Origin: Callorhinchus milii | Taxonomy: Eukaryota | Assembly (NCBI RefSeq): GCF_018977255.1 | Contig: NW_024705390.1 | Coordinates: forward strand, 1 to 49,152 | Direction: 5' to 3' | DNA: 49,152 nt | Shown here: in pieces, positions 13,245 to 48,434 of the stretch | Layout of the letters: every line of letters begins with the position of its first letter | How positions within the stretch are numbered: position 1 is the stretch's first letter | The notes under the pieces: generated by a model | Told to the model about the DNA's origin: nothing | Database searches by the model: none | What the model saw: the letters and a program-made list of their open reading frames with translations, nothing else | Made by a program: the position numbers and the translations under genes

Positions 13245-13269
13245 NNNNNNNNNNNNNNNNNNNNNNNNN
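13245..13269. other. Assembly gap (25 N)
   Basis: Run of N; there is also a single N at 43771. Confidence 1.
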
Positions 13270-13666: not shown

Positions 13667-13724
13667 TGTGGAGCGCACTGCACACAGGCAGGAGGGCAGC
13701 GAGAGCCATCACAAGGACCTTCAT
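13667..13724 (-). CDS. Class I leader exon ([19 protein letters not shown]), inverted relative to copy B
   Basis: 58-nt phase-1 exon with a GTAAGT donor, identical to the leaders of C (25597-25654) and D (35547-35604) but on the minus strand. Confidence 0.85.
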
Positions 13725-14649: not shown

Positions 14650-17600
14650 AGCCTGAGGTGTTGAGATGTTTTGTTACGCTGATATCGGAGGACAACAATT
14701 TTCCGGAGTATCTCGTTGCTGTGATGTTGGAGGATGTTCAGATCTATCACTATGAGAGCAACAGTCGGACAATTGTCATCCGGATTCCCAGTGTACAGAC
14801 GGCTGTTAATGATCATCACTTCAACATATATCTAGAAATATGGAAGTTAGTTCATACGACAATGAAGGAGAATATGCTGTATATGATGGAGAGCAGAAAT
14901 ATCACGAGCGGTGAGTGGTTTAATATTCCCTGTGAACATCCAGCACTGTTCACTGTGTGCGTGTGAGTGTGTGAGAGAGAGAATGTGTGTGTGTGTGAGT
15001 GTGAGACAGTCGGTGATGGACAGACACACTCTGCGCTGATCACAATGGCTGTCAATGGCTATTTCAGGGATTCACTATGTCCAGGTGTTGTCTGGCTGTG
15101 AGGTGAGGGAGGACGGCACTACAGACGGACACCTCACAGTCGCGTTCGATGGTGAAGATTTTCTCAGCTTTGACAAAAACGACCTGAGATGGATTTCTGC
15201 TGTTCCCGAGGCTCAGACCCTGAGACAGAAACTGGAAAATCAGACAGACATGAATAAGTATTTGAAACAGGACCTGGAGAATGATTGTCCGACTCGGATG
15301 GAGGAATACTATCAGCGTTCAAAATCCGCCTTCCAGAGACAGAGTGAGTGTGTGTTGTTACTAATATAAAATCACAGAATCATGTGGCAACTTGTGGCTG
15401 CGGATCACCAACCTTATTTGCCTCATTCCGTGCCTTACGCACACGTACTCCCAAACTGCCTTTGTCTGCACAGCATTTCTTGCTGTCCGATCGCTCCTGT
15501 TTCTGGAATCTTTATTCTCCCCAGTCCTCGCCAGGCGCCACTGCTCCCAGTCACCGAACAGATCAACTTCAAGATCCTCTCACTCGTTGTCAAATCACCT
15601 CCTGCCCTCGCGCCTCCCTATCTCTGTGATTTGCTTGTCCTCCACTCCACCACCCGCTGCCTCCGCTCGGCTGGCTCCAGCCTCCTGATTGTCCCTCGGC
15701 CCCTCCGCTCTGCCATGGGTTGCCGTGCCTTTGGATACCACACCCCGAAACTCTGGAACTCTCTACGCACCATCCCAGACTCACGTCTGCGGATGCAGAA
15801 ACGCCTGTCAAGCCCCCGATTAACAAATCACATATGACAACTGCATTTGGGATTCGATCATTCCCTATATGACCTTATTATATGGTTAAGCCTCGCTGTG
15901 TCAGGGTGGGCTCAGTGCTGAGCTGTGTGTGACTGTGCTCCCCTCCCCAGGCCGCCCTGACGTCTCAGTCAGTTACAGGAGGGACGTGGGGGGGAGAGCC
16001 CTTCTCTCCTGTCTTGTTACTGGCTTCTATCCGCGGCCCATCGAGGTGACCTGGACAAGGGACGGCAACACTGTCCACGAGGTGGAGTCCAGCGGTGTAT
16101 TACCCAACCACGACCACACCTTTCAGACAGTGAAGCAGATGGAGCTGGAGACGGGCTCCGCGGGGGAGCAGGGCTTCTCCTGTCTGGTGGAGCACAGCAG
16201 CCTCCAGGGGGTGTTGGAGGTGCCGTGGGGTAAGATCAACAACAACAACTCGGGGTTACACAGCAACCTCACACGGGGCAGCGTCTCGAGCACTTAACAG
16301 TGGTGGGGCTGACACAGGGGGAGGGGGAGGGGACCGTAAGCACAGTCAGAGAGGAAGGTCTTCAGGTGTGATGTGAAAATGGGGAAGGAGGGGGCAATGT
16401 GGAGGGATTGAGGGAAGGATTTGCAGAGTTTCAGACCGTAGTGGCTGTCAGCTCAGCCACTGATGGTGGAGCAGAAGGGACGAGGTATAAGCAGGAGGCC
16501 GGAGCCAACCGAGCGGAGGGGGCGGGTGGTGGAGTGAGGAGTAGGAAAGGTTGGGAAACTAAGGAGGTGTCGGGGACGTGTAGACAAGTGTGAGGAACTT
16601 GAAGTGGATGTGGTCTCTGATAGGGAGCCGGTGGCGCCTGGTGAGGGCCGGGGTGATGGGGGTGATGGGGGTGATGGGGGTGAGGTGTGTCGAGCGGGTG
16701 GTTATACGGGCGGTGGAGTTCTGGATTAGTTGGGGTCTGTGGATAGTGAGGTTGGGGAGACCAGAGAGGAGGGCATTGGAATAGTCAAGGTGGGAGGTGA
16801 CAAACACATGGACAAGGGTTTTGGTTGTGTTGGGTGTGAGGTAAGGTCGGAGGTGGGCAATGTGGAGGAAAGTGGTCCTGGTCAGGGACCGGATGTGGGG
16901 GAGGAAGGACAGCTGAGGGTCGAAGCTGATGCTCAGGTTATGTACAGGTTCAGTAAGTCTTAGGCAAAGGACAGGGAGGTTGAGGAGGTCAAAGCCACAG
17001 GAGACATACATGGGTCATCAGCATAAATAAGGTCACAGCGGGAAACAGGAATAACATGAGGTGTCAGTCTGTCTCCGGGAGATCTCTCTGTCTTCTCTAA
17101 ACAGCCGCCCATCGCCCCTTCTCATCCAACATTCTCTCATACTCCTCACCTCTCTCTCTTCCCATCCTCCAATACTCTGCAGATCTCTCTCTCTCACTTG
17201 TTGCTTTCTCTCTTCTCGCCCTCTGACCCTCTCCCTCTCTCAGACTCCGCTCCTCTCTCGCTCTCAGGACCTTAATGAAAGTTTGGTTGTTGTTCACTCC
17301 GAACAGATGGGAAAACAGGGAGAACTCCGGCCGGTTCCACTTCCTGGATCCTGGGCCTCATCATCGGGGCTTTGCTGGTGTCTGGGATTGTGGGGATTCT
17401 CTTCTGGAAAAGAAAACGAAAGAAAAAAGATGAATGGCACTGTCGCGGGAACCGATTATCAGAGAGAATCATAGAATTATACAGCACAGAAGGAGGCCAT
17501 TCAGCCCATCGTGTCTGTCTCTTTGAAAAGTGCGATACAAATCAACCCCACTCCCCCGCTCTCCCCCATAGCCCTGATCAACCCCACTCCCCCGCTCTCC

Positions 17601-25596: not shown

Positions 25597-28500
25597 ATGA
25601 AGGTCCTTGTGATGGCTCTCGCTGCCCTCCTGCCTGTGTGCAGTGCGCTCCACAGTAAGTGGCCCCAGACTCTGACTGTCACTGTGTGTTATAGTATATT
25701 CTGTGTATTTTGGGGGGTGCGGAGGGGGAGATTGGAGCAGAGATTGCAGCGGAGTTCCTTTTCTCAGTCTGTCACCATTCACTGACACTGTACTCTTCCC
25801 TTCCGTGTGTACACTGTGAGCTGTGCCCTGTGTGTACACTGTGAGCTGTGCCCTGTGTGTACACTGTGAGCTGTGCCCTGTGTGTACACTGTGAGCTGTG
25901 CCCTGTGTGTACGCTGTGCCTTGTGTGTACACTGTGAGCTGTGCCCTGTGTGTACACTGTGAGCTGTGCCGTGTGTATACACTGTGAGCTGTGCCCTGTG
26001 TGTACACTGTGAGCTGTGCCCTGTGTGTACACTGTGAGCTGTGCCGTGTGTGTACACTGTGAGCTGTGCCCTGTGTGTACACTGTGAGCTGTGCCGTGTG
26101 TGTACACTGTGAGCTGTGCCCTGTGTGTACACTGTGAGCTGTGCCCAGTGTGTACACTGTGAGCTGTGCCCTGTGTGTACACTGTGCCCTGTGTGTACAC
26201 TGTGAGCTGTGTGGGCATTTGACAGTTGCGAGCGTGTGCTGTATGTGACAAGTGTGTGTGAAGCGTGTGAACAGTATGTACTCAGTGACCTGTTACACAC
26301 GTACAATCAGTGTGTGTGTTTGTGTCTGACAGAGCCTCAGGTGTTGAGATACTTACACACACTGGTGTCAGCGGACGGAGAACTTCCAGAGTACTACTGT
26401 GCTGTGATGTTGGAGGATGTTGAGATCTATCACTACGACAGCAACAGTGAGAGAATTGTCAGTCGGATTCCCGGTGTTCAGACGGCTGTTAGAGAACAGC
26501 GCTTCCCTGTACGTGTGGAGAGGGTGAAGGCAGATTATATGACGGTGAAGGAGAATATGTTGTATATGATGAAGAGGAGGAATATTACGAGCGGTGAGTG
26601 GTTTAATATTCACTGTAAACATCCAGCGCCGTTCACTGTGTGTGTGTGTTGAGTACATGTGAGTGTGTGTGTGTCTTTGTCATTGTGTGTTTGTGTGAGT
26701 TTCCGTGTATCTGTGTGAGTGTGTGTTTGTGGGTGTGTTGAGTACATGTGAGGGAGACGAGGTGTGTGTCTCTGTCATTGTGTGTGCGGTGTGTGTTTGT
26801 GGTGTACAAGTGTGAGGGGGAGTCAGTGAGTGTTTTTTTCTCTTTGTCAGTGAGTGTGTGAGACAGTCGGTGATGGACAGACACACTCTGCACTGATCAC
26901 AATGGCTGTCAATGGCTATTTCAGGGGCTCACTATGGCCAGGTGTTGTCTGGCTGTGAGGTGAGGGAGGACGGCACTACAGACGGACACATCACAGTCGC
27001 GTTCGATGGGGAAGATTTTCTCAGCTTTGACAAAAACGACCTGAGATGGATTTCTGCTGCTCCCGAGGCTCAGACCCTGAGACGGAAACTGGACAACGAC
27101 AGAGACATGAATCAGTATTGGAAACAGAAACTGGAGAATGATTGTCTTAATCGGATGGAGGAATACTATCAGTATTCAAAGTCCACCTTCCAGCGACAGA
27201 GTGAGTGTGTGTTGTTACTAATATGGCCTTATTATATGGTTAAGCCTCGCTGTGTCAGGGTGGGCTCAGTGCTGAGCTGTGTGTGACTGTGCTCCCCTCC
27301 CCAGGCCGCCCTGACGTCTCAGTCAGTTACAGGAGGGACGTGGGGGGGAGAGCCCTTCTCTCCTGTCTTGTTACTGGCTTCTATCCGCGGCCCATCGAGG
27401 TGACCTGGACAAGGGACGGCAACACTGTCCACGAGGTGGAGTCCAGCGGTGTATTACCCAACCACGACCACACCTTTCAGACAGTGAAGCAGATGGAGCT
27501 GGAGACGGGCTCCGCGGGGGAGCAGGGCTTCTCCTGTCTGGTGGAGCACAGCAGCCTCCAGGGGGTGTTGGAGGTGCCGTGGGGTAAGATCAACAACAAC
27601 AACTCGGGGTTACACAGCAACCTCACACGGGGCAGCGTCTCGAGCACTTAACAGTGGTGGGGCTGACACAGGGGGAGGGGGAGGGGACCGTAAGCACAGT
27701 CAGAGAGGAAGGTCTTCAGGTGTGATGTGAAAATGGGGAAGGAGGGGGCAATGTGGAGGGATTGAGGGAAGGATTTGCAGAGTTTCAGACCGTAGTGGCC
27801 GTCAGCTCGGCCACTGATGGTGGAGCAGAAGGGACGAGGTATAAGCAGGAGGCCGGAGCCAACCGAGCGGAGGGGGCGGGTGGTGGAGTGAGGAGTAGGA
27901 AAGGTTGGGAAACTAAGGAGGTGCCGGGGACGTGTAGACAAGTGTGAGGATCTTGAAGTGGATGTGTTCTCTGAGTCCTGTGGAGTCCTGTAGCTCAGTG
28001 GTTAGAGCACTCGCTTTGCAAGCGAGAGACCTGAGTTCAATTCCAGGCAGAGGGCGAAACCTCGGGCAAGTTTCCTTACTCCACACAGAGCCTAATAATA
28101 ATCCCTCCAAAAAACCAAAAACAATATAATAAAATTGGTCATTTTCAATCTACGACTGTTTGTGGGACATTGCTGTGCGCAATTGGCTGCCGCGTTCGCC
28201 CTCAAATATACAGTCAATTCACTTTACAGTATATTCTGTGAAGCGCTTTGGGACGTCCTCCCGACGTGAAAAGCGCTATATCAAATGCAAGGATTATTAT
28301 TATTATTATTATAGGGAGCCAGTGGCGCCTGGTGAGGGCCGGGGTGATGGGGGTGATAGGTGTGATGGGGGTGAGGTGTGTCGAGCGGGTGGTTATACGG
28401 GCGGTGGAGTTCTGGATTATTTGGGGTCTGTGGATAGTGAGGTTGGGGAGACCAGAGAGGAGGGCATTGGAATAGTCAAGGTGGGAGGTGACAAACACAT

Positions 28501-31500
28501 GGACAAGGGTTTTGGTTGTGTTGGGTGTGAGGTAAGGTCGGAGGTGGGCAATGTGGAGGAAAGTGGTCCTGGTCAGGGACCGGATGTGGGGGGGGAAGGA
28601 CAGCTGAGGGTCGAACCTGACGCTCAGGTTATGTACAGGTTCAGTGAGTCTAAGGCAAAGGGCGGTGAGGTTGAGGAGGTCATAGCCACAGGAGACACGA
28701 TGGGAGCCAAGGAGTATGGCTTCTGTCTTGTTGATGTTCAGCTACAGGAAGTTTACGCTCAACCAGTCCTTGATGTCTGACAAACAAACTGACAGGACAT
28801 CAGGGATCTGGAGTCACAGCTGGAGGAGGATTGGGTGTCAACCACATACATAGGTCATCCACACACATAAGGTCACAGCGGGAAACCGGGAATAACATGA
28901 GGTGTCAGTCTGTCTCCGGGAGAACTCTCTGTCTTCTCTAAACAGCCGCCCATCGCCCCTTCTCATCCCGTTCTCCAATATTCTCTCATACTCCTCACCT
29001 CTCTCTCTTCCCGTCCTCCAATACTCTGCAGATCTCTCTCTCTCTCGATTTGCATTCTCTCATCTCGTCCTCTGACCCTCTCCCTCTCTCAGACTCCTCT
29101 CCTCTCTCACTCTAATGTTGCTGTTCACTCCGAACAGATGGGAAAACAAAGAAAACTCCGTCCGGTTCCACTTCCTGGATCCCGGGCCGGATCATTTTGC
29201 AGGCGTCTGGGATTGTTGTTGGGATTCTCGTCTGAAAATGAGAAAAGGTGAATAAATGGGACCGTCGCGGAGGCCGATTATCAGAGAGAACCACAGAATC
29301 ATACAGCATAGGAGGAGGCCATTCAGCCCATCGTGTCTGTTCCAGCTCTTTGAAAAGTGCTATCAAAATCAACCCCACTCCCCCGCTGTCTCCCCATAGC
29401 CCTGATCAACCCCACTCCCCCGCTCTCTCCCCATAGCCCTGATCAACCCCACTCCCCCGCTCTCTCCCCATAGCCCTGTTCAACCCCACTCCCCCGCTCT
29501 CTCCCCATAGCCCTGTTCAACCCCACTCCCCCGCTCTCTCCCCATAGCCCTGATCAACCCCACTCCCCCGCTCTCTCCCCATAGCCCTGATCAACCCCAC
29601 TCCCCCGCTCTCTCCCCATAGCCCTGATCAACCCCACTCCCCGCTCTCTCCCCATAGCCCTGATCAACCCCACTCCCCCGCTCTCTCCCCATAGCCCTGA
29701 TCAGCTTCCAACAGCCTTTCAGGCAACACATTCCAAATCCCAACAACTCGCTTCTGATAAAATGTCTCCTCCCCTCCCCTCTGTTTCAGGCCTTTATCAC
29801 TGGTCCACACCTTTATCCCCTCAAGGCTGGACTATGGGAACTCTCCCCTCGTCGGCCTTCCCGGCCCTCCCTCCACACGGCAGGTCATTCAGAACTCTGC
29901 AGCTCATGTATTGTCCCGCACCAGACACCGCGCACACATCACTCCCACCCTCGCCCTCACCCTCACTCCCACCCTCGCCCTCACTCCCACCCTCGCTCGC
30001 CTACACTGGCTCCCCATCCTCCAGTGGATCGAATTCAAGATCCTCATCGTCACCTACAAGGCCATTCACAGCCTCGCTCCCTCCTACCTCTCCAACCTAC
30101 TATCCCCCTACCTACCTGCCTGTACCCTCCGTTCCTCTGGCTCCGGTCTGCTCTACGTCCCCCGCCCCAACCGCCCGACCATCTGTGGCCTTCAGCCTCT
30201 CAGCCCCGAGGCTCTGGAACTCCATCCCCAGTGCCTTTGCCGCTTCCTCCCTTTCCTCCTTCAAGGCCGGTCTCAAGACCTTTCTCTTTGACCTTCAGCC
30301 TTCAGCTCCGCTCTCGACTCTCTACCCCCTCCTCACCCCCTCCCTTCCCTCTCCTCACCATGACCATCTCCCCCCTCCTCGCTCCTCCCCTTCCCTCACC
30401 ATTTCCCCCCCTCCTCGCTCCCTCCCTTCCCCCCCCTCACCCTGACCATCTCTCCCATCCTCTCTCCCTCCCTCCCCTCACTCTGACCATTTCCCCCCAA
30501 TGCTCGGGTCCTGACCCAACTGTACAGCGCCTTCGGACGTCCTCCTGATGTGAAAGGCGCTCTATAAATGGAATCTTGTTGTTCTTGTTGTTTCTTTTAA
30601 CAGCTATTTTAAGTCGGTGTCCTCGGGTTACCGACCCACGCGCCAGTGGGAATAGTGTCTCCTTGTACCCCCTATCGAATCCCCTCATCATTTTCAAAAC
30701 TTCTAGAGTCTCCTCTGCTCCAAGGAGAATAATCCTCGCGTCTGTGGCCTCCTGATAACTGAAGCCCTCATTCCTGGTGCCATCGCGGTCAATCTCCTTT
30801 GCACACTCTCCAATGCCTTGACATCCTTCCTACAGTGTGGGGCCCAGAACTGAACACAGTCTCTAACTAACTCTAACCCTACAGTGTGGGGCCCAGAACT
30901 GAACAGTCTCTAACTAACCCAAACCCTATAGTGTGGGGCCCAGAACTGAACACAGTCTGTGTCTCAGGCGTAACCAGTGTTTTATAATTATAACATCACT
31001 GGTCCTGTGGTTCACTGACCCCCACACCCGTCACTGTCTGTCTGTGTTACTGGGTGTTGTGTGTGTGTGACTGTGAGACCGGCTGTTGTCTGTATATGTG
31101 AGACCGGGTTTTATATGTGTGTTGTCTCTGTGTGTGTAACTGACTGTTGTGTGTGTGAGGGCTGAACGAGCATCACTGGGTCTGTGTGTAATTGACGTCT
31201 GTTTATTGACAGGACCCGGGACTCACCAGTACAGCCGTCCATCCAGTAAGTGAATAACAGTGCGGCTGTACACCGGGTCAGACTACACTCTGCAAGTGGA
31301 CGTGTGTGACGTGTTCTCTGCTCACCTCACTGTCAAACCCTACAATGTACAGCAATTTCTGTCTGTCTGACTGACTGTCTGACTGTAATGTACAGGCGTT
31401 TCCTGTCTGACTGTGACATACAGGCATTTTCTCTGTGACTGACTGACTATAACATAGAGATATTGACTGTCTGACTCTGACTCCATCTTTCATCTGTTTC

Positions 31501-32531
31501 TGGTCACAGGTGAAGAAAGCGGCCAATCATCCAATGGTCAATTAACAGGTAAGAGCCGGTCAGCGCCACACGGCCTCTCGTGATCCCCAGTCACTAACCC
31601 GCTGTGAGGATCAGGACTGGGCTGTGACAGTGCCACTGGGGGAGTGGAATCCCCCCCCACCCCCCCCCCGCGCTCACCGGGGACGTCCTTCCTGAGACCA
31701 GGAAGTGATCCCAGTGAAGCTCACAGGGTATTGGCCATCCAGTGCCCACTGGCACCGGGGCCCTGGCACTGAGCGGGTTACCACTGGCCACTGGCGCAGC
31801 CACGCGGCCCACTCGGCTCCTGTTATCCTGCGGCCAAAGCCCTGAGGGGTCGGGCAGTCCTCGCTGGACAAGCAGCGGGAAGCTGCCAGACAGGGCTCTC
31901 AGGGGCAAAGCTGTGGGTTTAGTGGGTTAGACTCCAGCAGTTACCCCAACGCACACTCTGGGTCCCCTCCAAACCACTCACACTCACACACACTCACACA
32001 CACTCACTCACACTCACACACACACACTCTGGGTCCCCCCCAAACCACTCACACACACTCACTCACTCACACACACTCGGGGTCCCCAAGCCTTGGCTCT
32101 GGCCAACCCTCTCCAGGGTCAGGTAAACACCATGTGTCCTGCACAGAGAGAGAGAGAGCACTCCATCCCAGACACGGGGAGAGATCCGTGTGGAGGTGAC
32201 ATACACACGTGTGACTCTCAGGCCTGGTTTGGGGACTGTTAAGCACAGTGATGGTTTCCACGTGTGTCAGACACGCGGCTGATCACAGTGATGGTTTCCA
32301 CGTGTGTCAGACACGCGGCTGATCACAGTGATGGTTTCCACGTGTGTCAGACACGCGGCTGATCACAGTGATGGTTTCCACGTGTGTCAGACACGCGGCT
32401 GATCACAGTCCGTTGTCTCTGTGTGTGACCCGGTGATTGGGGACTTAATGACCGTCACTGGTCTCTGTTTGTGAGTGACCTCTGTTTGATTACAGAACCT
32501 GGGAGTCTCCAGTCCCACCGTCCATCAGTCA
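25597..32531 (+). CDS. MHC class I-like heavy chain, copy C, with truncated TM (stop 29233-29235). Exons: leader 25597-25654, alpha1 26333-26593, alpha2 26925-27200, alpha3 27305-27583, TM 29138-29247, cyt1 31213-31245, cyt2 31510-31548, cyt3 32496-32531, probable last exon from 32621
   Basis: Leader through alpha3 are intact with canonical splice sites. The TM exon translates DGKTKKTPSGSTSWIPGRIILQASGIVVGILV*. Confidence 0.9.
27975..28310 (+). mobile_element. Young full-length tRNA(Ala-TGC)-derived SINE with L2-type tail, private to copy C
   Basis: A-box tagctcagtggttaga, anticodon arm ctcgc-tttgcaa-gcgag, B-box gagttcaattc, body ttgctgtgcgcaattggctgccgcgtt, and tail gcgctttgggacgtcc...gcgctatatcaaatgcaagg(att)n. 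The empty site ctctga/tagggag is seen in A, B and D. Confidence 0.92.
29789..30595 (+). mobile_element. 5'-truncated L2 LINE insertion, private to intron 5 of copy C
   Basis: Encodes LARLHWLPILQWIEFKILIVTYKAIHSLAPSYLSNLL..LRSSGSGLL and ends cagcgccttcggacgtcc...aaaggcgctctataaatggaatcttgttg. It is flanked by tgtttc on both sides; the empty site is seen in B. Confidence 0.85.
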
Positions 32532-35343
32532 GTGAGTAACAGTGAGGCTGAACACGTACCAATGGACATGAACTCAGTGACATGTGTAATAAATAAACCC
32601 AGTCCCTGCTCTTTGTGAAGAGGAGCAGCGCATAAACATACTTTATATTAATTTTTTATACACTTTTTGTGAACATCTTTTATAAACTTGTGACTTTTAT
32701 ATAAAATGAAGAGAATTGTTGTATTTATATAAATACAAAGAATGTTTCATATACAGTGTATATAACCGATTAGATTTATTTGTAGCATTAAAGGAATGTG
32801 TGTGATGTGTAACACGGCTGTACAGGAAGGTTGTGTCACCTGTAACCAGTCTGTGTAACAGCAGCTCATGTGTGTTCTGCGCTGTGATTCACAGAACATT
32901 TATTCTTTGTGAGTTTCAGCAACAAATCAAAATAAACTGTGACACAAACGGCCAATTAATATTGGAGCCAAATCCATCATTATAAACACATGGACTGTAG
33001 TGTGTGAGCGAGTGTGAGAGTCACTGTGATCACACTCAGACTGTAGTGTGAGCGAGTGTGAGAGTCACTGTGATCACACTCAGACTGTAGTGTGTGAGCG
33101 AGTGTGAAAGTCACTGTGATCACACTCAGACTGTAGTGTGAGCGAGTGTGAGAGTCACTGTGATCACACTCAGACTGTAGTGTGAGCGAGTGTGAGAGTC
33201 ACTGTGATCACACTCAGACTGTAGTGTGTGAGCGAGTGTGAGAGTCACTGTGATCACTCTCAGACTGTAGTGTGTGAGCGAGTGTGAGAGTCACTGTGAT
33301 CACTCTCAGACTGTAGTGTGTGAGCGAGTGTGAGTCACTGTGATCACTCTCAGACTGAAGTGTGTGAGCGAGTGTGAGAGTCACTGTGATCACTCTCAGA
33401 CTGTAGTGTGTGAGCGAGTGTGAGTCACTGTGATCACACTCAGACTGTACCCCCCCCCCGGGGCTGTGCCCCCCCCCCGGAGCTGTGCCCCCCCCCGGAG
33501 CTGTGCCCCCCCCCCGGGGCTGTGCCCCCCCCGTGGGGCTGTACCTGTTGCTCACTGTATAACAAATGGATGATCCGTCCAATCACCGCCACATGTCGGG
33601 GACACAGTCGGGATCTCGGGGCCTTTTTCCCGCCTCTCCAGCTCGGGGGCGGCACGTGATCGGCTCCAACTGCCACTGAGCGCCGAGCGCAGCCTCGAGC
33701 GGGAGCCGTTGGGCAGCAGCAGCGTCACGTGGGTCTGAGTCCAGCCAATCGGGAGCGGGAGTTGGGGAGGAGCACGTGGTCTGAGCGCGGGCGGAAGCCG
33801 TTGGGGGGCGTCACGTGGTCTGAGCGCGGGCGGGAGCCGTTGGGGGGCGTCACGTGGTCTGAGCGCGGGCGGGAGCCGTTGGGGGGCGTCACGTGGTCTG
33901 AGCGCGGGCGGGAGCCGTTGGGGGCGGGAGGGAGAGACCCTTTGCCGAGATGTGGTGTTGGCAGTTAGTCAGTAGGACTGGAACCATGTGAGTGCGGTCC
34001 CACTGAGGAGGGTGAGGGAGGAGAGGCGGTGGAGGAGGATGGAGTGGTCGACGGTGTTGAACGTGGGGGAGAGGTCGAGGAGGGAGTGGGAGCGCTGGTC
34101 ACAGAGAGAGAGAGGACGCCATTTGTTAATTTGACGAGTGTTGTCTCTGTGCTGTCGGCCGTCACCGTGAAAACCAGACTGGAGGGACGGGAGGAGGGAG
34201 CGGAGGGGCTCGAGTGCGGAGTGGAGGGGCTCGAGGAGCGAACGGAGGGGCTCGAGTGGGGAGTGGAGGGGCTCGAGGAGGGAGTGGAGGGGCTCGAGGA
34301 GGGAGTGGAGGGGCTCGAGGAGGGAGTGGAGGGGCTCGAGGAGGGAGTGGAGGGACTCGATTGGGGAGTGGAGGGGCTCAAGGAGGGAGCGGAGGGGCTC
34401 GAGGAGGGAGTGGAGGGGCTCGAGGAGGGAGTGGAGGGGCTCGAGGAGGGAGTGGAGGGTTTCGATTGGGGAGCGGAGTGGCTCGAGGTGGGAGCGGAGT
34501 GGCTCGAGGAGGGAGTGGAGGTGCTCGAGGAGGGAGCGGAGGGGCTCGAGGAGGGAGCGGAGGGGCTCGAGGAGGGAACGGAGGGGCTCGAGGAGGGAGC
34601 GGAAGGGCTCGAGGAGGGAGTGGAGCTGCTCGAGGAGGGAGTGGAGGGACTGGATTGGGGAGTGGAGGTGCTTGAGGAGGGAGTGGAGGAGGGAGTGGAG
34701 GGGCTCGAGTGGGGAGTGGAGGGGCTCGGGTGAAGAGTGGAGGGGCTCGAGTGGGGAGTGGAGGGGCTCGAGGAGGGAGTGGAGGAGCTCGGGTGGAGAG
34801 TGGAGGGGCTCGGGTGAAGAGTGGAGGGGCTCAAGTAGGGAGTGGAGGAGCTCGGGTGGAGAGTGGAGGAGCTCGGGTGGAGAGTGGAGGGGCTCAAGTA
34901 GGGAGTGGAGGAGCTCGGGTGGAGAGTGGAGGGGCTCAAGTAGGGAGTGGAGGAGCTCGGGTGGAGAGTGGAGGAGCTCGGGTGAAGAGTGGAGGGGCTC
35001 AAGTAGGGAGTGGAGGAGCTCGGGTGGAGAGTGGAGGGGCTCGAGGCGGGAGTGGAGGGAGAGGTGTAGCACATGTTCCAGGGCCTTGGCCAGGAAGGGT
35101 GGGTTTGAAATGGGTCTGAAATTCGTGAGAGTGGAGGGATCGCGGGTTGGACTTTTGAGGAGATTCTACTCACTCACTCACTCACTCTGACAGACACACG
35201 ACACGATTGACACAGTCACAATCACATCATATACACTCACACACACACACACACACACCCTCTCTCACACACTCACACCCTCTCTCCCACACACTCACAC
35301 CCTCTCTCTCACACACACACCCCCACGGGGAGGAACCACAGAT

Positions 35344-35410
35344 CACAACCTGTTTCAGAGCCTTTTCCCCGGAGACCTGTTACGAGCGGCTCCCGAGATC
35401 CTCCCATTGG
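35344..35410 (+). promoter_or_regulatory. S-X-Y class I promoter module, copy D
   Basis: Near-identical to the module of copy C. Confidence 0.75.
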
Positions 35411-35546
35411 CGGTGAGTGAGTCAGTGTGAGATCAGTCAGAGAGGGAGTGAGTGAGATCAGAGAGGCCTTAGGGCTGAGGTCCGGTTGGACACCATCAGT
35501 GTGAGGTCCAGTGTTGGGCACATTGCAGTGACCATCCAACAGGACC

Positions 35547-38500
35547 ATGAAGGTCCTTGTGATGGCTCTCGCTGCCCTCCTGCCTGTGTGCAGTGCGCTC
35601 CACAGTAAGTGGCCCCAGACTCTGACTGTCACTGTGTGTTATAGTATATTCTGTGTATTTTGGGGGGTGCGGAGGGGGAGATTGGAGCAGAGATTGCAGC
35701 GGAGTTCCTTTTCTCAGTCTGTCACCATTCACTGACACTGTTCTCTTCCCTTCCGTGTGTACACTGTGAGCTGTGCCCTGTGTGTACACTGTGAGCTGTG
35801 CCCTGTGTGTACACTGTGAGCTGTGCCCTGTGTGTGCACTGTGAGCTGTGCCCTGTGTGTACACTGTGAGCTGTGCCCTGTGTGTACACTGTGCCCTGTG
35901 TGTACACTGTGAGCTGTGCCCTGTGTGTACACTGTGAGCTGTGCCCTGTGTGTACACTGTGAGCTGTGCCCTGTGTGTACACTGTGAGCTGTGCCCTGTG
36001 TGTACACTGTGAGCTGTGCCCTGTGTGTACACTGTGAGCTGTGCCCTGTGTGTATGCTGTGCCCTGTGTGTACGCTGTGCCCTGTGTGTACGCTGTGCCC
36101 TGTGTGTACACTGTGCCCTGTGTGTACGCGGTGCCCTGTGTGTACGCGGTGCCCTGTGTGTACGCGGTGCCCTGTGTGTACCCGGTGCCCTCTGTGTGCA
36201 CTGTGAGCTGTGCCGTGTGTACGCGGTGCCCTGTGTGTACGCGGTGCCCTGTGTGTACGCGCTGCCCTGTGTGTACGCGGTGAGCTGTGTGTACACTGTA
36301 CGCTGTGCCCTGTGTGTACACTGTGCCCGATTTCTCCAACCGAACCCCCTACTACCCTGTTCACACCCTGCGTTCAGCGGGCTCCGGCCTGCTTCACCTG
36401 CCCGCCTCGCTCCCGCGACTATTGGCGGGTGGGCCTTCCCGCCACTCTGCCCCCACCCTCTGGAACTCCATCCCGCAGTCCCTCCGCCTCGCACCCTCCC
36501 TCGAGCCCTCCCTCGCCATCTTCAAGACTCACCTCTGGACCCTCCTCTTTGACCGTGCTTTCAATCTCCTGCTACCCCCCTTGCCCTTCACCCTCCTCCA
36601 CCCCGACCCCCGGCTCGGGTGTGTAACTCTGTCTGTCCAGCGCCTTGGAACATCCTCCCGACATGAAAAGCGCTTTACACATGTAATTTTGTGGTGGTGG
36701 TTGTTGTTATAGTTATTTCTCTGTTACAGCACCGAAGGAGACCATTGGCCATTTGTGCCTGTGCCGGTTTGGGGCTGGGAGGGGAGGGGGGGGCGGTGGG
36801 GGTGCAGGGGCTGAGGGGTGAGTGGCTGAGGGAGTGGGGCTGATGTGGAGGGTTTGACGCGGAGGGGATGAGGGGCACAGATATTGAACCTGGGTTCCTT
36901 TTCTCTGTCTGTGAGATTGCTCTCGTTCCCTCCGTGTGTTCACTGTGAGCTCTGTGCGCTGCTGTTGTATTATTGTCATTCCAGAGATGGACACAATACT
37001 CCAACTGAGCCCCAACCAGTGATTTCTAAAGATTTAGCAAAACTTCTTTGCTTTGTACTCTGTGCCTCTATATATAAAGCCAAGGATCCCATAGGCCTTT
37101 TTAACAGTGTGTCGTGTCGTGTCCTGCCACCTTCAAAGGTTCGAGCACGTGAACCCCCAGGTCTCTCGGTTCCTGCACCCCATTTAAAATGATACCATTT
37201 ATCTCGCAATATCTCTCCTCATTCCTCCTGACAAAGAGACTGACACACAGAGAGACAGACACATACACACACAGACTGAGACAAACAGAGACAGACACAA
37301 AGACAGACATACTGAAAACTGACACCGAAAGGCAGAGAGAGAGAGTGAGAGGATGTGTTGTGTGGATGTGATGGACACTCACTCACACAGAGCCACAAAC
37401 CGCCAAACACAAATCGCAGCGGAAGCTTTTACCCGGAGCCACTTTGCCAACGTTTCAAAAGGGAATTGGAAGGCACTTGAAAAGGAAATCATTGGAAGGC
37501 TTTGGGGAGAGGGAAGGGTTGAATATCAAGACCAGCCGATAGGTGTGTGAGATCAGTGAGTGAGAGAGAGTCAGTGTGTGTGGAGTCGCCGAGTGACAGA
37601 GTCAGTGTGTGAGCAGAGTGTCTGATTGAGCTGTGCCCTGTGTGTACACTATGCCCTGCGTGTGCACCGTGCCCTGCGTGTGCACCGTGCCCTGCGTGTG
37701 CACTGTGCCCTGCGTGCGCACTGTGCCCTGCGTGCGCACTGTGCCCTGCGTGCGCACTGTGCCCTGCGTGTACACACTGAGGTGTGTTTACACTCTGAGA
37801 TTTGCCCTGTGTGTACACTGTCTCCTGTGTGTATACTGTGAGCTGTGCCCTGTGTGTACACTATGAGCTAATTGCGCTCTGCATGCGTACTGTGATGTGC
37901 GTTTGCACTGTGTTTGTGAGTGTATACTGTGAGTTGTGTGTACACTTTGAGCTGTGTGTACACTGTGCCCTGGGTACGCAGTGTCCGATCATCCAAAACT
38001 CTGCAGCTCGTGTACTCTCACCACCAGACTCCGTGACCCCATCACTCCCACCCTCGCCCGACCCCACTGGCTCCCCACCCCCCAGAGGATCGAGTTCAAG
38101 ATCCTCGTCCTCACCTTTAAGGTCACCTTGTTGTTGTCCTGCATGTACACTGTGCCCTGGCTATAAACTGGGCCCTGTGTGTACACTGTGTCCTGCGTGG
38201 ATAATGTGAGCTGTGTGTGCACTGATCTGTGTGCTCTGTGCCCTGTGTGTACACTGTGAGCTGTGCCCTGTGTGTACACTGTGAGCTGTGCCCTGTGTGT
38301 ACACTGTGCCCTGTGTGTACACTGTGTCCTGTGTGTACACTGTGAGCTGTGTGGGCATTTGACAGTTGCGAGCGTGTGCTGTATGTGACAAGTGTGTGTG
38401 AAGCGTGTGAACAGTATGTACTCAGTGACCTGTTACACACGTACAACCAGTGTGTGTGTTTGTGTCTGACAGAGCCTCAGGTGTTGAGATTCTTACAAAC

Positions 38501-41500
38501 ACTGGTGTCAGCGGACGGAGAACTTCCAGAGTACTACTGTGCTGCGATGTTGGATGATGTTGAGATCTATCACTACGACAGCAACAGTGAGAGAATTGTC
38601 AGTCGGATTCCCAGTGTACAGACGGCTGTTAGAGAACAGCGCTTCCCTATACGTGTGGAGGAGGTGAAGACAGATTATATGTGGTTGAAGGAGAAAATGT
38701 TGTATATGATGAAGAGCAGGAATATTATGAGCGGTGAGTGGTTTAATATTCTCAGTGAACATCCAGCACCGTTCACTGTGTGTGAGTGTGTGTGTTGAGA
38801 ACGTGTGTGAGGGAGAGTGAGTGTGTGTGAGTGTCTCTGTGATTATGTGTGTGAGTGTGTGAGACGGTCGGTGATGGACAGACACACTCTGCGCTGACAC
38901 AATGGCTGTCAATGGCTATTTCAGGGGCTCACTATGCCCAGGCGATAACTGGCTGTGAGGTGAGGGAGGACGGCACTACAGACGAACACTTCACAGTCGC
39001 ATTCGATGGTGAAGATTTTCTCAGCTTTGACAAAAACGACCTGAGATGGATTTCTGCTGTTCCCGAGGCTCAGACCCTGAGACAGAAACTGGACAACGAC
39101 AGAGACATGAATCAGGATTGGAAACAGGTCCTGGAGAATGATTGTCCTACTTGGATGGAGGAATACTATCAGTATTCAAAGTCCACCTTCCAGCGACAGA
39201 GTGAGTGTGTGTTGTTACTAATATGGCCTTATTATATGGTTAAGCCTCGCTGTGTCAGGGTGGGCTCAGTGCTGAGCTGTGTGTGACTGTGCTCCCCTCC
39301 CCAGGCCGCCCTGACGTCTCAGTCAGTTACAGGAGGGACGTGGGGGGGAGAGCCCTTCTCTCCTGTCTTGTTACTGGCTTCTATCCGCGGCCCATCGAGG
39401 TGACCTGGACAAGGGACGGCAACACTGTCCACGAGGTGGAGTCCAGCGGTGTATTACCCAACCACGACCACACCTTTCAGACAGTGAAGCAGATGGAGCT
39501 GGAGACGGGCTCCGCGGGGGAGCAGGGCTTCTCCTGTCTGGTGGAGCACAGCAGCCTCCAGGGGGTGTTGGAGGTGCCGTGGGGTAAGATCAACAACAAC
39601 AACTCGGGTTACACAGCAACCTCACACGGGGCAGCGTCTCGAGCACTTAACAGTGGTGGGGCTGACACAGGGGGAGGGGGAGGGGACCGTAAGCACAGTC
39701 AGAGAGGAAGGTCTTCAGGTGTGATGTGAAAATGGGGAAGGAGGGGGCAATGTGGAGGGATTGAGGGAAGGATTTGCAGAGTTTCAGACTGTAGTGGCTG
39801 TCAGACAAGTGTGAGGATCTTGAAGTGGATGGTCTCTCTGATAGGGAGCCAGTGGCGCCTGGTGAGGGCCGGGGTGATGGGGGTGATGGGGTGAGGTGTG
39901 TCGAGCGGGTGGTTATACGGGCGGTGGAGTTCTGGATTAGTTGGGGTCTGTGGATAGTGAGGTTGGGGAGACCAGAGAGGAGGGCATTGGAATAGTCAAG
40001 GTGGGAGGTGACAAACACATGGACAAGGGTTTTGGTTGTGTTGGGTGTGAGGTAAGGTCGGAGGTGGGCAATGTGGAGGAGGTGGAGGAAAGTGGTCCTG
40101 GTCAGGGACCGGATGTGGGGGAGGAAGGACAGCTGAGGGTCGAACCTGACGCTCAGGTTATGTACAGGTTCAGTGAGTCTAAGGCAAAGGGCGGTGAGGT
40201 TGAGGAGGTCAGAGCCACAGGAGACACGATGGGAGCCAAGGAGTATGGCTTCTGTCTTGTTGATGTTCAGCTACGGGAAGTTTACGCTCAACCAGTCCTT
40301 GATGTCTGACAAACAAACTGACAGGACATCAGGGATCTGGAGTCACAGCTGGAGGAGGATTGGGTGTCAACCACATACATAGGTCATCCACACACATAAG
40401 GTCACAGCGGGAAACCGGGAATAACATGAGGTGTCAGTCTGTCTCCGGGAGAACTCTCTGTCTACTCTAAACAGCCGCCCATCGCCCCTTCTCATCCCAT
40501 TCTCCAATATTCTCTCATACTCCTCACCTCTCTCTCTTCCCGTCCTCCAATACTCTGCAGATCTCTCTCTCTCTCTCTCACTTGTTGCTTTCTCTCTTCT
40601 CATCCTCTGACCCTCTCCCTCTCTCAGACTCCGCTCCTCTCTCACTCTCAGGACCTTAATGAAAGTTTGGTTGTTGTTCACTCCGAACAGATGGGAAAAC
40701 AGGGAGAACTCCGGCCGGTTCCACTTCCTGGATCCTGGGCCTCATCATCGGGGCTTTGCTGGTGTCTGGGATTGTGGAGATTCTCGTCTGGAAAAGAAAA
40801 CGAGAGCGAAAAGGTGAATAAATGGGACTGTCGCGGGAGCCGATTATCAGAGAGAATCATAGAATTATACAGCACAGAAGGAGGCCATTCAGCCCATCGT
40901 GTCTGTCTCTTTGAAAAGTGCGATACAAATCAACCCCACTCCCCCGCTCTCCCCCCATAGCCCTGATCAACCCCACTCCCCCGCTCTCCCCCCATAGCCC
41001 TGATCAACCCCACTCCCCCGCTCTCCCCCATAGCCCTGATCAACCCCACTCCCCCGCTCTCCCCCCATAGCCCTGATCAACCCCACTCCCCCGCTCTCCC
41101 CCGATCAACCCCACTCCCCCGCTCTCCCCCCATAGCCCTGATCAACCCCACTCCCCCGCTCTCTCCCCATAGCCCTGATCAACCCCACTCCCCCGCTCTC
41201 CCCCCATAGCCCTGATCAACCCCACTCCCCCGCTCTTCCCCATAGCCCTGATCAACCCCACTCCCCCGCTCTCCCCCATAGCCCTGATCAACCCCACTCC
41301 CCCGCTCTCCCCCCATAGCCCTGATCAACCCCACTCCCCCGCTCTCCCCCATAGCCCTGATCAACCCCACTCCCCCGCTCTCCCCCATAGCCCTGATCAA
41401 CCCCACTCCCCCGCTCTCTCCCATAGCCCTGATCAACCCCACTCCCCCGCTCTCCCCAAGCCCTGATCAACCCCCAGTGGGAATTCTCCTTGTTCCGCCT

Positions 41501-45518: not shown

Positions 45519-48434
45519 CTTTTCGCTCTCGTTTTCTTTTCCAGAAGAGAATCCCCACAATCCCAGACACCAGCAAAGCCCCGATGATGAGGCCCAGGAT
45601 CCAGGAAGTGGAACCGGCCGGAGTTCTCCCTGTTTTCCCATCTGTTCGGAGTGAACAACAACCAAACTTTCATTAAGGTCCTGAGAGCGAGAGAGGAGCG
45701 GAGTCTGAGAGAGGGAGAGGGTCAGAGGGCGAGAAGAGAGAAACGAGAGAGAGAGAGATCTGCAGAGTATTGGAGGACGGGAAGAGAGAGAGGTGAGGAG
45801 TATGAGAGAATATTGGAGAATGGGATGAGAAGGGCGGATGGGCGGCTGTTTAGAGAAGACAGAGAGTTCTCCCGGAGACAGACGGACACCTCATGTTATT
45901 CCCGGTTTCCCGCTGTGACCTTATGTGTGTGGATGACCTATGTATGTGGTTGACACCCAATCCTCCTCCAGCTGTGACTCCAGATCCCTGATGTCCTGTC
46001 AGTTTGTTTGTCAGACATCAAGGACTGGTTGAGAGTAAACTTCCCGTAACACTTACTGAAAGGTCCCCTCCCCCTCCCCGTGTCAGCCCCACCACTGTTA
46101 AGTGCTCGAGACGCTGCCCCGTGTGAGGTTGCTGTGTAAACCCGAGTTGTTGTTGTTGATCTTACCCCACGGCACCTCCAACACCCCCTGGAGGCTGCTG
46201 TGCTCCACCAGACAGGAGAAGCCCTGATCCCCCGCGGAGCCCGTCTCCAGCTCCATCTGCTTCACTGTCTGAAAGGTGTGGTCGTGGTTGGGTAATACAC
46301 CGCTGGACTCCACCTCGTGGACAGTGTTGCCGTCCCTTGTCCAGGTCACCTCGATGGGCCGCGGATAGAAGCCAGTAACAAGACAGGAGAGAAGGGCTCT
46401 CCCCCCCACGTCCCTCCTGTAACTGACTGAGACGTCAGGGCGGCCTGGGGAGGGGAGCACAGTCACACACAGCTCAGCACTGAGCCCACCCTGACACAGC
46501 GAGGCTTAACCATATAATAAGGCCATATTAGTAACAACACACACTCACTCTGTCGCTGGAAGGTGGACTTTGAATACTGATAGTATTCCTCCATCCAAGT
46601 AGGACAGTCATTCTCCAGGACCTGTTTGCAATACTGATTGATGTCTGTGTCATTGTCCAGTTTCCGTCTCAGGGTCTGAGCCTCGGGAACAGCAGAAATC
46701 CATCTCAGGTCGTTTTTGTCAAAGCTGAGAAAATCTTCACCATCAAACGCCATTGTGAAGTGTTCGTATGTAGTGCCGTCCTCCCTCACCTCACAGCCAG
46801 TTATCGCCTGGGCATAGTGAGCCCCTGAAATAGCCATTGACAGCCATTGTGATCAGCGCAGAGTGTGTCTGTCCATCACCGACCGTCTCACACACTCACA
46901 CACATAATGACAGGGACACTCACACACACTCACTCTCCCTCACAGATGTAGTCAACACACACACACACACACAGTGAACAGTGCTGGATGTTCACAGGGA
47001 GTATTGAGCCACTCACCGCTCATAATATTCCTGCTCTTCATCATATACAACATTTTCTCCTTCAACGTCACATAATGTCTCTTCACCCCCTCTACATGTA
47101 CAAGGAAGTGCTGTTCTCTAACAGCCGTCTGTACACCGGGAATCCGACTGACAATTCTCTCACTGTTGCTGTCGTAGTGATAGATCTCAACATCCTCCAA
47201 CATCGCAGCACGACTGTACTCTGGAAGTTCTCCGTCCGCTGACACCAGTGTGTGTAACAATCTCAACACCTGAGGCTCTGTCAGACACAAACACACACAC
47301 TGATTGTACGTGTGTAACAGGTCACTGAGTACATACTGTTCACACACTTCACACACACTTGTCACATACAGCACACGCTCGCAACTGTCAAATGCCCACA
47401 CAGCTCACAGTGTACACACAGGGCACAGTGTACACACAGGGCACAGTGTACACACAGCTCACAGTGTACACACAGCTCACAGTGTACACACAGCTCACAG
47501 TGTACACACAGGGCACAGTCTACACACAGGACACAAGTGTACACACAGGGCACAGCTCACAGCGTACACACGTACACACAGCTCACAGCTCCCTGCAGCC
47601 CTGCGATGACTGTGAGCTCAGTCACGCTGTGGGGGGAGGGGGGGGGGTAGGAGGAGAGGGGTTCGCACCCCACAGCCCCTGTAGCTCAGGGGTTAGACCC
47701 CTCGCACCCCACAGCCCCTGTAGCTCAGGGGTTACACCCCTCCCCTCACCCCCACAGCCCCTGTAGCTCAGGGGTTAGACCCCTCCCCTCACCCCCACAG
47801 CCCCTGTAGCTCAGGGGTTAGACCCCTCACCCCACACCCCACAGCCCCTGTAGCTCAGCGGTTAGACCCCTCCCCTCACAAGGCAGAGGATGTGGGTTGG
47901 ATTCCCGAGTGGGACAGGACAGGGGGAAACCTTAGGCAGTTTCCTTACCCACCCCCACCCACACCCCACACCCCACCCCAGCCCCACCCCCCCACCCACA
48001 CACCCCCCCCCCCACACCCCCACCCCCCCCCCCACCCACCCCCAAGCCCACCCCCCCCCCCGCCACCCACCCCCACCCCCCACCCCCCCCCACCCACCCC
48101 CACCCCACCCACTCACGAACAGCAGTCAGTGGGAACCTGCAGCTCATCAAATGGTCGATCGCTTTTCCGGTGATGATCCCTTCGACCAAAATAGATTTTG
48201 ACCGAAAGATTCCGGTGGCTTCAGCCGCGGCTGTTTTCCCACAACACGTACGTACGGTCACTGCGCTGTCCTGCGAAGGGCTTTGCGACGTCTCAGGAGA
48301 CGTGAGAAGGCGCCGCGTCAAACGCGAGGATTATTATTAATATCACTATTATTGTGACAGTCCGACGGCCACTTACTTTGGAGCCCAAAGCACAAGGGCA
48401 GGAGGGCAGCGACAGCCGTCAGGAACAGCTTCAT
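45519..48434 (-). CDS. MHC class I-like heavy chain, copy E, lacking cytoplasmic exons. Exons: leader 48377-48434, alpha1 47017-47277, alpha2 46549-46824, alpha3 46166-46444, TM 45519-45641
   Basis: Open exons with canonical sites and the same leader as A. Homology to the other copies stops at 44574, about 43 nt before the cyt1 acceptor. Confidence 0.88.
47665..48340 (+). mobile_element. tRNA-derived SINE with five A-box units in intron 1 of copy E
   Basis: Paralogue of 8940-9420 with five units of ccctgtagctcaggggttaga. Confidence 0.8.

Follow-up and report, generated by a model that had tools for sequence, protein, structure and literature searches.

The window analyzed here, a stretch of 49,152 nucleotides from the elephant fish Callorhinchus milii, contains five MHC class I genes (copies A to E), all of them nonclassical and intact. 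They probably belong to a class I family that evolves in two modes, in which the alpha3 region is homogenized between copies and the groove is diversified by selection, each copy being suited to a ligand of its own that is not anchored in the classical manner.

RESULTS

Gene structure, identity, and expression

The five genes were located by tblastn and exon mapping and lie within 49 kb; besides them, the window contains only a fragment of a choline transporter gene (SLC44-type). Each domain is encoded by one exon, the introns are in phase 1 with split codons, and the alpha1, alpha2, and alpha3 exons of all copies are open, with AG/GT splice sites. The individual features are the following.

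9459–9515, minus strand: copy A leader exon (tblastn with the P0015 leader, 100%)
7987–8247, minus strand: copy A alpha1 exon (tblastn and exon mapping, AG/GT)
7507–7782, minus strand: copy A alpha2 exon (tblastn and exon mapping)
7124–7402, minus strand: copy A alpha3 exon (limits set from the alpha2 end plus a 104-nt intron; B, C, and D are identical to A here)
14650–14910, plus strand: copy B alpha1 exon (most divergent copy, 64–71 of 261 nt)
15068–15343, plus strand: copy B alpha2 exon (exon mapping)
15951–16229, plus strand: copy B alpha3 exon (preceding intron with an insertion of ~500 bp)
25597–25653, plus strand: copy C leader exon (leader search)
26333–26593, plus strand: copy C alpha1 exon (exon mapping)
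26518–26520, plus strand: recombination breakpoint in alpha1 (copy C coordinates; informative sites)
26925–27200, plus strand: copy C alpha2 exon (exon mapping; an identical RNA contig is spliced to alpha3)
27153–28600, plus strand: homogenized block comprising the alpha2 end, intron 3, alpha3, and most of intron 4 (0–2% among copies; right edge approximate)
27305–27583, plus strand: copy C alpha3 exon (within the homogenized block)
35547–35603, plus strand: copy D canonical leader exon (alpha1 lies 2.9 kb downstream)
38473–38733, plus strand: copy D alpha1 exon (RNA joint 38732>38924)
38925–39200, plus strand: copy D alpha2 exon (RNA joints)
39305–39583, plus strand: copy D alpha3 exon (RNA joint 39200>39305; onward splicing from 39583)
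40690–40818, plus strand: copy D connecting-peptide/transmembrane exon (exon search)
48378–48434, minus strand: copy E leader exon (leader search)
47017–47277, minus strand: copy E alpha1 exon (exon mapping)
46549–46824, minus strand: copy E alpha2 exon (exon mapping)
46166–46444, minus strand: copy E alpha3 exon (1 nt off the other copies)

No leader in the gene's own orientation was found for copy B, which is adjoined by an inverted leader cassette, and the membrane exon of copy C is altered. Thus, some copies are possibly non-functional. The assembly has gaps at 13245–13269 and 43771. Correctly spliced RNA contigs were found for D-like, C, and A-like copies, and one RNA sample (X1) contained both D-like and C sequences.

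NCBI lists C. milii proteins that are identical to copies B, C, D, and E. Pfam recognized alpha2 as MHC_I (1.7e-15) and alpha3 as C1-set (4e-18); alpha1 was not recognized by Pfam. The AlphaFold model (pLDDT 89.7) matched chicken BF2 in Foldseek with a TM score of 0.88–0.89. The proteins have the MHC class I fold, with an alpha1/alpha2 platform and a C1-set alpha3, and carry the Cys101/Cys164 pair and the alpha3 cysteines of an MHC class I heavy chain. The N86 site reads N-I-T, N-I-M, or N-I-S among the copies; D and E have N-I-M, which is no sequon. A profile search with alpha1 matched only 13 proteins in 1.84 billion, and a second homolog search at a looser threshold returned the same 17 proteins, with nothing gained. 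The nearest non-chimaera protein found, from a sawfish, shares only 36% identity. Further family members lie outside the window, namely a sixth paralog, F, and the cDNA-derived protein V9KN34, which differs from copy A in only five alpha2 residues. Compared at the protein level only, both have additional residues at the same variable positions. With several tandem paralogs and divergent grooves, the genes form a multicopy class Ib cluster.

Homogenization and exchange between copies

Sequence differences are distributed very unevenly along the genes. Between copies, alpha3 differs at 0–1 of 279 positions and intron 3 at 0–1 of 104, and the divergence of intron 4 is 2–4%. Among A, C, D, and E, 16–28 of 261 positions differ in alpha1 and 10–25 of 276 in alpha2. 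Informative sites revealed a recombination breakpoint in alpha1: upstream of 26518, seven sites group A with E and C with D, and downstream of the breakpoint, 21 sites group A with C and D with E through intron 2 and alpha2. A single tree for alpha1 plus alpha2 was rejected, two partition trees being better by 47.7 lnL units. Further undetected exchange tracts are likely in the cluster.

Variable positions in the groove

HLA numbering was derived from HMMER alignments with class I chains of fish and sharks whose structures are solved, from N86 and Cys101/Cys164, and from the AlphaFold secondary structure. Against the solved structures, only the sheet half of the alpha1 profile was aligned; because HMMER failed to align the helix, the alpha1 helix was numbered from N86 and the predicted secondary structure. 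A top match of the alpha1 profile to a designed Kelch-like protein was discarded as spurious. Under this independent numbering, all 22 HLA positions that the preliminary description had named as variable do vary.

The variable sites are enriched on the groove. On the published HLA pocket list of 34 positions (PMC8589423), 21 of 34 pocket positions vary among A, C, D, and E, compared with 23 of 143 others (Fisher p = 2.6e-7). The 28 sites with P(omega > 1) above 0.5 in the site models described below include 22 in the antigen recognition site (p = 1e-7). A broader list of 59 positions, which we take to represent the antigen recognition site, gave 30 of 59 variable positions against 14 of 118 (p = 4e-8), and the published 34-position list gives the same answer. 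Sixteen of the 28 sites belong to the floor or to inward-facing pockets (7, 9, 24, 26, 95, 99, 114, 116, 63, 66, 67, 70, 73, 74, 156, and 159), and six are located on the helix tops (61, 62, 69, 145, 150, and 151). The changes are densest at positions corresponding to HLA pockets A to D, namely all of these floor and inward-facing positions except 26, and the F-pocket end is invariant (80, 81, 123, 143, 146, and 147). Charge-radical substitutions are frequent, for example R/E/G/I at position 66 and E/K/V/D at position 159. Free cysteines occur in the groove at position 24 in C, D, and F, at 7 in B, and at 156 in E.

Of the eight residues that classically anchor the peptide ends (Y7, Y59, Y84, T143, K146, W147, Y159, and Y171), six are lost; the residues found include L/C/Y/F/L at position 7, R/H at 59, L at 143, L at 147, and E/D/K/V/V at 159. 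That the alignment keeps only K146 and Y171 supports the earlier statement that these paralogs cannot bind peptides classically. Judged from the sequences, the loss of six of the eight anchors together with the charge-radical substitutions makes it most likely that each paralog binds a different, non-classically anchored, putative ligand.

Selection on the groove might also be real and yet be driven by a receptor or a pathogen protein on top of the alpha1/alpha2 platform, in the style of an NK-receptor ligand or a viral evasin, instead of a groove ligand. Many class I-like molecules operate without a ligand, the classical peptide anchors are lost here, and 6 of the 28 candidates lie on top of the helices. 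We nevertheless consider this alternative unlikely, as 16 of the 28 belong to the groove floor or point into the pockets, positions that a closed, ligand-free platform would bury, and a buried core rarely tolerates a change of charge.

Tests for positive selection

The preliminary description had based its case on a by-eye comparison of C and D. Its counts of 13 amino-acid-changing codons and 1 silent codon in alpha1, and of 13 and 2 in alpha2, were reproduced exactly by our recount, as was the lack of differences in alpha3 (0/279) and the preceding intron (0/104). The resulting 26:3 ratio is, however, a weak argument for selection (neutral expectation 2.87:1, binomial p = 0.037), and we dropped it as proof, the whole-domain tests being non-significant. 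The C–D whole-domain dN/dS of 1.89 is not significantly above 1 (p = 0.16), and the whole-domain omega is about 1 (M0, 1.19; p = 0.43).

Codon models were therefore judged by site class and by position; they were fitted with our own implementation rather than with PAML or HyPhy, on only five sequences from one assembly, and have nominal chi-square p-values. The site models used a separate tree on each side of the alpha1 breakpoint. With recombination thus allowed for, the omega > 1 class remained in the M7/M8-type check that had been proposed (2dlnL = 28.1). The comparisons M1a–M2a, M7–M8, and M8a–M8 all gave a 2dlnL of ~28.1 (p ~8e-7 for M1a–M2a and M7–M8), with ~19% of codons at an omega of ~6.8. 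An artifact of multi-nucleotide mutation was modeled and rejected, the signal being reduced and not abolished: M1a was rejected with p = 3e-5 under the multi-hit model, p = 0.0015 with site-rate variation, and p = 0.003 with both. When the divergent copy B was removed, the signal was weaker but kept (p = 3e-5 down to 0.01–0.016).

A fixed-site model with the published pocket list gave an omega of 3.25 inside the pockets (p = 0.010) versus 0.87 outside. For C and D, the antigen-recognition-site codons showed a dN of 0.182 and a dS of 0.016 (p = 0.007), with an omega of 0.48 outside; this test is free of recombination inflation because the comparison is pairwise. Omega outside the groove (0.73–0.87) is not significantly below 1, so that constraint is supported indirectly only. 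Neither GC nor CpG bias was detected: nonsynonymous W>S and S>W changes are balanced (14 vs 13), and CpG transitions account for 4 of 41 nonsynonymous versus 4 of 12 synonymous changes. With this balance and the low CpG share among nonsynonymous changes, GC-biased conversion and CpG decay were rejected as causes. Across at least 141 substitutions, there are no stop codons or frameshifts (P = 0.002 for no stop codon). We conclude that the genes are under diversifying selection, as a groove-enriched codon class with omega > 1 persists after recombination, multi-hits, and rate variation have been taken into account.

It is improbable that redundant duplicates merely drift under relaxed constraint, with conversion homogenizing alpha3 and most introns and with a replacement excess that arises incidentally because conversion is patchy, some changes span several nucleotides, and silent sites are scarce. 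M1a is still rejected in the presence of rate variation and multi-hits (p = 0.003–0.01), even if the likelihood-ratio statistic is then ~12 instead of 28. The whole-domain omega of ~1 and the values outside the groove, which are not significantly below 1, would suit such drift, as would the lack of a correctly oriented leader in B and the altered membrane exon in C; against these stand the omega of 3.25 in pockets defined a priori and a groove dN of 9–24%, which is 3–9 times higher than the intron divergence of 2–4%. The pairwise tests are immune to recombination inflation, the copies are free of stops and frameshifts and yield spliced transcripts, and the variable sites track helix periodicity and floor positions, not contiguous tracts. 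Least probable of all is that some paralogs are alleles or haplotigs set side by side by the assembler, with fewer loci and a signal of allelic balancing selection: the two assembly gaps, the inverted leader cassette beside B, and the closeness of V9KN34 to A (five alpha2 residues) would fit, but five copies exceed two haplotypes' worth, flanking introns, insertions, and membrane exons are not the same in all copies, and RNA sample X1 alone contains both D-like and C sequences.

DISCUSSION

We favor homogenization of the alpha3 region combined with selected diversification of the groove. Gene conversion or unequal crossing-over may have rendered the block from the alpha2 end to most of intron 4 near-identical in all copies, and the initial two-thirds of alpha1 have been exchanged among copies at least once. 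Selection would maintain the copy differences at the groove-lining residues of alpha1 and alpha2. We infer that a ligand is the selective agent, that the chains pair with beta2-microglobulin, and that alpha3 is homogenized because the block preserves a common partner surface, e.g., for beta2-microglobulin or a co-receptor. Only with considerable reserve would we go as far as a chimaera-specific germline panel, with a fixed F-pocket end and an identical alpha3 in common, with A to D pockets that differ by copy in charge or hydrophobicity, and with a free groove cysteine in several copies, each copy presenting a distinct class of non-peptide or modified ligand to innate-like T cells; such a panel would have evolved independently, as a counterpart of CD1, MR1, and XNC at the root of the jawed vertebrate tree.

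Divergence in the groove had at first been regarded as unusual for nonclassical genes. This view is overstated: in multigene nonclassical families, paralogs that differ there are nothing out of the ordinary. In 2021, Almeida and coworkers reportedly described UEA and UBA as multicopy nonclassical class I lineages of sharks; to our knowledge, UEA has been reported absent from chimaeras. The elephant fish genes resemble UEA and UBA as a multigene class Ib cluster of a cartilaginous fish in which peptide-end residues are lost and groove chemistry differs by gene. In sharks, these MHC-region multigene families have lost peptide-end residues, and their groove chemistry is distinct between genes or sublineages (Verissimo et al., 2023, PMC10751288; PMC12562908). 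The likeness is one of features and not an established orthology to UEA, UBA, or UDA, the nearest non-chimaera match being the sawfish protein with its 36% identity. The literature that we searched contained no formal test of omega > 1 for the shark UEA and UBA families.

In Xenopus, the alpha3 domains of the XNC genes are strikingly conserved between genes, and some members restrict semi-invariant T cells; as far as we know, the XNC genes are not MHC-linked. The elephant fish family is similar in kind. The XNC (mhc1-uba) family is a large one of 23–29 heterogeneous nonclassical class I genes, molded by duplication and recombination (PMC12562908). Xenopus belongs, however, to another vertebrate class, and in sequence terms only the class I fold is common to both.

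Classical class I genes (HLA-A/B/C, shark UAA) share with the elephant fish copies the Hughes–Nei pattern of dN > dS in the groove and dN < dS elsewhere, introns that are more uniform than exons 2 and 3, and a mosaic exon 2. In contrast, our comparison is between loci and not allelic, the F-pocket end is invariant, and the copies lack the peptide-end residues of class Ia, six of the eight anchors being missing. Copies B, D, and E bear automatic NCBI names of MR1 and zinc-alpha-2-glycoprotein (ZAG), with which they share ~30% identity and the fold; the elephant fish model is matched as well or better by classical class I chains of chicken and fish. MR1 is defined by Lys43, which forms a Schiff base with the ligand, whereas all copies have Ile at position 43. 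ZAG is soluble, whereas the elephant fish genes have transmembrane exons.

Chimaeras are the least-studied branch among the oldest living jawed vertebrates. Holocephalans have been called 'data-deficient' for MHC (Verissimo et al., 2023, PMC10751288). The finding is unsurprising in kind; its value is that of a clear case with statistical support, in which the recombination breakpoint is mapped and the homogenized block defined. If the favored explanation is true, chimaeras would have a class Ib family of their own that is actively diversified at the groove while alpha3 is kept uniform. Particular genes would then be singled out for testing, along with particular residues, namely the free cysteines and positions 66 (R/E/G/I) and 159 (E/K/V/D). 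Ligand-specialized panels of nonclassical class I molecules, as in frogs and sharks, would then have arisen in holocephalans too.

Gene copies and residue numbering

The five nonclassical MHC class I copies (A to E) were located by tblastn with the exons of copy C as the query.

Class I copies (alpha1 to alpha3, tblastn) and a neighbouring gene fragment
7124-8247, minus strand, copy A
14650-16229, plus strand, copy B
26333-27583, plus strand, copy C
38473-39583, plus strand, copy D
46166-47277, minus strand, copy E
998-1396, minus strand, SLC44-type (choline-transporter) gene fragment (ORF; Pfam Choline_transpo, 4e-15), adjoining copy A

All 15 alpha1, alpha2 and alpha3 exons were open and of equal length between copies, with AG/GT boundaries and phase-1 split codons. 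Pfam assigned alpha2 to MHC_I and alpha3 to C1-set; alpha1 had no Pfam match. Copies B, C, D, and E are identical to named NCBI Callorhinchus milii proteins, automatically labelled 'MR1-like', 'F10 alpha chain-like' and 'zinc-alpha-2-glycoprotein-like'. The SLC44-type exon would fit an MHC class III setting.

Residues were numbered as HLA equivalents, independently of the preliminary description. HMMER alignments to class I structures of carp, frog, and nurse shark were colinear for alpha2 and for the sheet half of alpha1. The alpha1 helix, whose numbering is partly inferred, was positioned by means of the N86 glycosylation motif. Relative to HLA, one-residue deletions fall in loops 14-19, ~41-46, and ~108 and at residue 90, and the alpha2-helix kink has one additional residue. 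The AlphaFold model built for copy D (pLDDT 89.7) has all its strands and helices where the numbering predicts, and Foldseek returned a TM score of 0.88-0.89 against chicken classical class I. All 22 HLA positions previously listed as variable across the copies were also variable under this numbering.

Probable selection at particular groove positions

The preliminary description had proposed positive selection on the groove from a codon count for C versus D, which we reproduced exactly: 13 changed codons and 1 silent in alpha1, 13 and 2 in alpha2, and no differences in alpha3 (279 nt) or the preceding intron 3 (104 nt). This raw replacement:silent codon ratio is weak evidence of selection. 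Since neutrality predicts 2.87 replacements per silent change (kappa 2.7), the observed 26:3 reaches only p = 0.037. Whole-domain Nei-Gojobori dN/dS was 1.89 for C-D (p = 0.16) and 0.7 to 1.9 for all pairs, and a one-ratio codon model gave an omega of 1.19, not different from 1.

The selection signal lies at particular sites. Of the 34 HLA pocket positions given by Nguyen et al. (PMC8589423), 21 varied among copies A, C, D, and E, versus 23 of 143 others (p = 2.6e-7). When F, a sixth paralogue from an older assembly, was included, three or more residues occurred at 17/34 pocket positions versus 15/143 others (p = 1e-6); F brings new residues at already hypervariable positions. Copy A and the transcriptome-derived protein V9KN34 differ by five residues in alpha2, of which three (114, 155, 159) occupy pocket positions. 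Between C and D, dN was 0.182 and dS 0.016 at antigen-recognition-site codons (p = 0.007), with an omega of 0.48 at the codons outside; recombination is unable to inflate such pairwise comparisons.

Likelihood models were fitted with self-written code, not PAML or HyPhy, and their p-values are uncalibrated by simulation. With sites fixed beforehand, omega at the published pocket positions was 3.25 (p = 0.010), or 3.46 with multi-hits (p = 0.015); it was 0.87 outside them, and 2.15 for a broader antigen-recognition-site list (p = 0.024). Site models, applied to five sequences of one assembly with a separate tree per recombination partition, favoured M2a over M1a (2dlnL 28.1, p = 8e-7), with 19% of codons at an omega of 6.8. 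M8 was likewise favoured over M7 (about 28.1, p = 8e-7) and over M8a (about 28.1, p = 1e-7).

M1a versus M2a under further settings (2dlnL; p); the two site-rate classes apply equally to silent and replacement changes
All copies, double/triple-nucleotide changes: 20.6; 3e-5
All copies, rate classes: 13.1; 0.0015
All copies, both: 11.6; 0.003
Copy B left out, plain: 21.0; 3e-5
Copy B left out, multi-hit: 14.0; 9e-4
Copy B left out, rate classes: 8.2; 0.016
Copy B left out, both: 9.3; 0.01

Posteriors exceeded 0.95 at HLA equivalents 7, 9, 23, 61, 66, 69, 98, and 159, and 0.8 additionally at 10, 24, 151, and 156. The expected enrichment on the groove was borne out (p = 1e-7): of the 28 sites with a posterior above 0.5, 22 belong to the antigen recognition site. 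The F-pocket end (80, 81, 123, 143, 146, 147) shows no variation, and pockets A to D are hypervariable.

Of the 28 candidate sites, 16 lie on the floor or face inward, and the substitutions are radical in charge. We infer that a bound ligand drives selection; a receptor or pathogen may act in its place, with lower probability. The doubt cast earlier on classical peptide binding is supported: only K146 and Y171 are kept of eight classical peptide-end anchors, and thus classical peptide anchoring is, judged from sequence, unlikely. Unpaired cysteines, unusual in class I, occupy groove-lining positions 24 (C, D, F), 7 (B), and 156 (E) and could be relevant to ligand chemistry. In D and E, the sequon N-I-T reads N-I-M (alpha1 columns 83-85, HLA 86-88), so both would lack the conserved N86 glycan.

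Recombination, mutation bias and constraint

Informative sites change from AE/CD to AC/DE between 26517 and 26521, within alpha1, and the latter grouping persists across intron 2 and alpha2; two trees beat one by 47.7 log-likelihood units. Mutation bias is no explanation for the selection signal. Polarised replacement changes numbered 14 W>S versus 13 S>W, and CpG transitions made up 4 of 41 replacement versus 4 of 12 silent changes.

Relaxed constraint alone is a less likely explanation. Across at least 141 substitutions, none created a stop codon (P = 0.002 under neutrality). Divergence between copies is only 2-4% in intron 4 and mostly 0-3% in intron flanks, and groove dN is 9-24%. At the start of intron 2, 3-8 of the initial 53 nt (6-15%) differ among A, C, D, and E, near exon level.

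Transcripts and flanking exons

In Logan contigs from RNA runs, GT..AG joints coincide exactly with the predicted exon borders: alpha1-alpha2 in D-like contigs, alpha2-alpha3 in one A-like contig and one identical to copy C alpha2, and alpha3 into the membrane exon. At position 38699, contigs of runs X1 and X2 carry C, not G, which replaces Met with Ile at the equivalent of HLA-78 in a D-like transcript; the variant represents either an allele of D or an additional paralogue. One X1 contig joins the alpha1 exon of copy D (contig match at 38471-38528) to an upstream exon at 37353-37541, the N-terminus of NCBI's 'isoform X2' model. This exon lacks an evident signal peptide, and copy D may therefore have a leaderless isoform; its canonical leader (35547-35603) lies further upstream.

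Leader and transmembrane exons were mapped, and the leaders of A, C, D, and E are canonical. At 13668-13724 (minus strand), opposite in strand to copy B, lies a leader exon that matches those of C and D exactly. Copy B thus lacks a leader in its own orientation, and its NCBI model begins with read-through of upstream sequence. The cassette lies close to an assembly gap (N run, 13245-13269) and may be a true inversion or an assembly artefact. Copy B alone has an insertion of ~500 bp in the alpha2-alpha3 intron (15344-15950), which looks like a SINE-type repeat of a kind present elsewhere in the window. In copy C, the connecting-peptide/transmembrane exon (29137-29232) is altered, reading ...WIPGRIILQASGIVVGILV and then a stop, with neither the basic stop-transfer nor the cytoplasmic tail that the other copies have. 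A TGTGTACACTGTGAGCTGTGCCC-like tandem repeat (unit roughly 25-50 bp), differing in length from copy to copy, lies directly upstream of every alpha1 exon.

Tandem repeats upstream of alpha1
8370-8850
13990-14370
25800-26210
35750-36330
47400-47590

Discussion

The best-supported picture for the cluster combines birth-and-death, conversion and diversifying selection. The class Ib genes would evolve by birth-and-death and exchange segments within alpha1; conversion would homogenise the alpha3 block (end of alpha2, intron 3, alpha3, and most of intron 4), and diversifying selection would hold the groove of each copy distinct. An assembly artefact is a less likely explanation.

The family appears isolated in sequence comparisons: the closest non-chimaera protein found is 36% identical, and an alpha1 profile search found only 13 proteins among 1.84 billion. 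A search of the accessible literature, short of the two original descriptions of nonclassical lineages in sharks, found no paper analysing this cluster. The signature matches that of Hughes and Nei for classical class I, but in the elephant fish it lies between loci. The pattern agrees with those described for shark UEA/UBA and the Xenopus XNC families (PMC10751288, PMC12562908).
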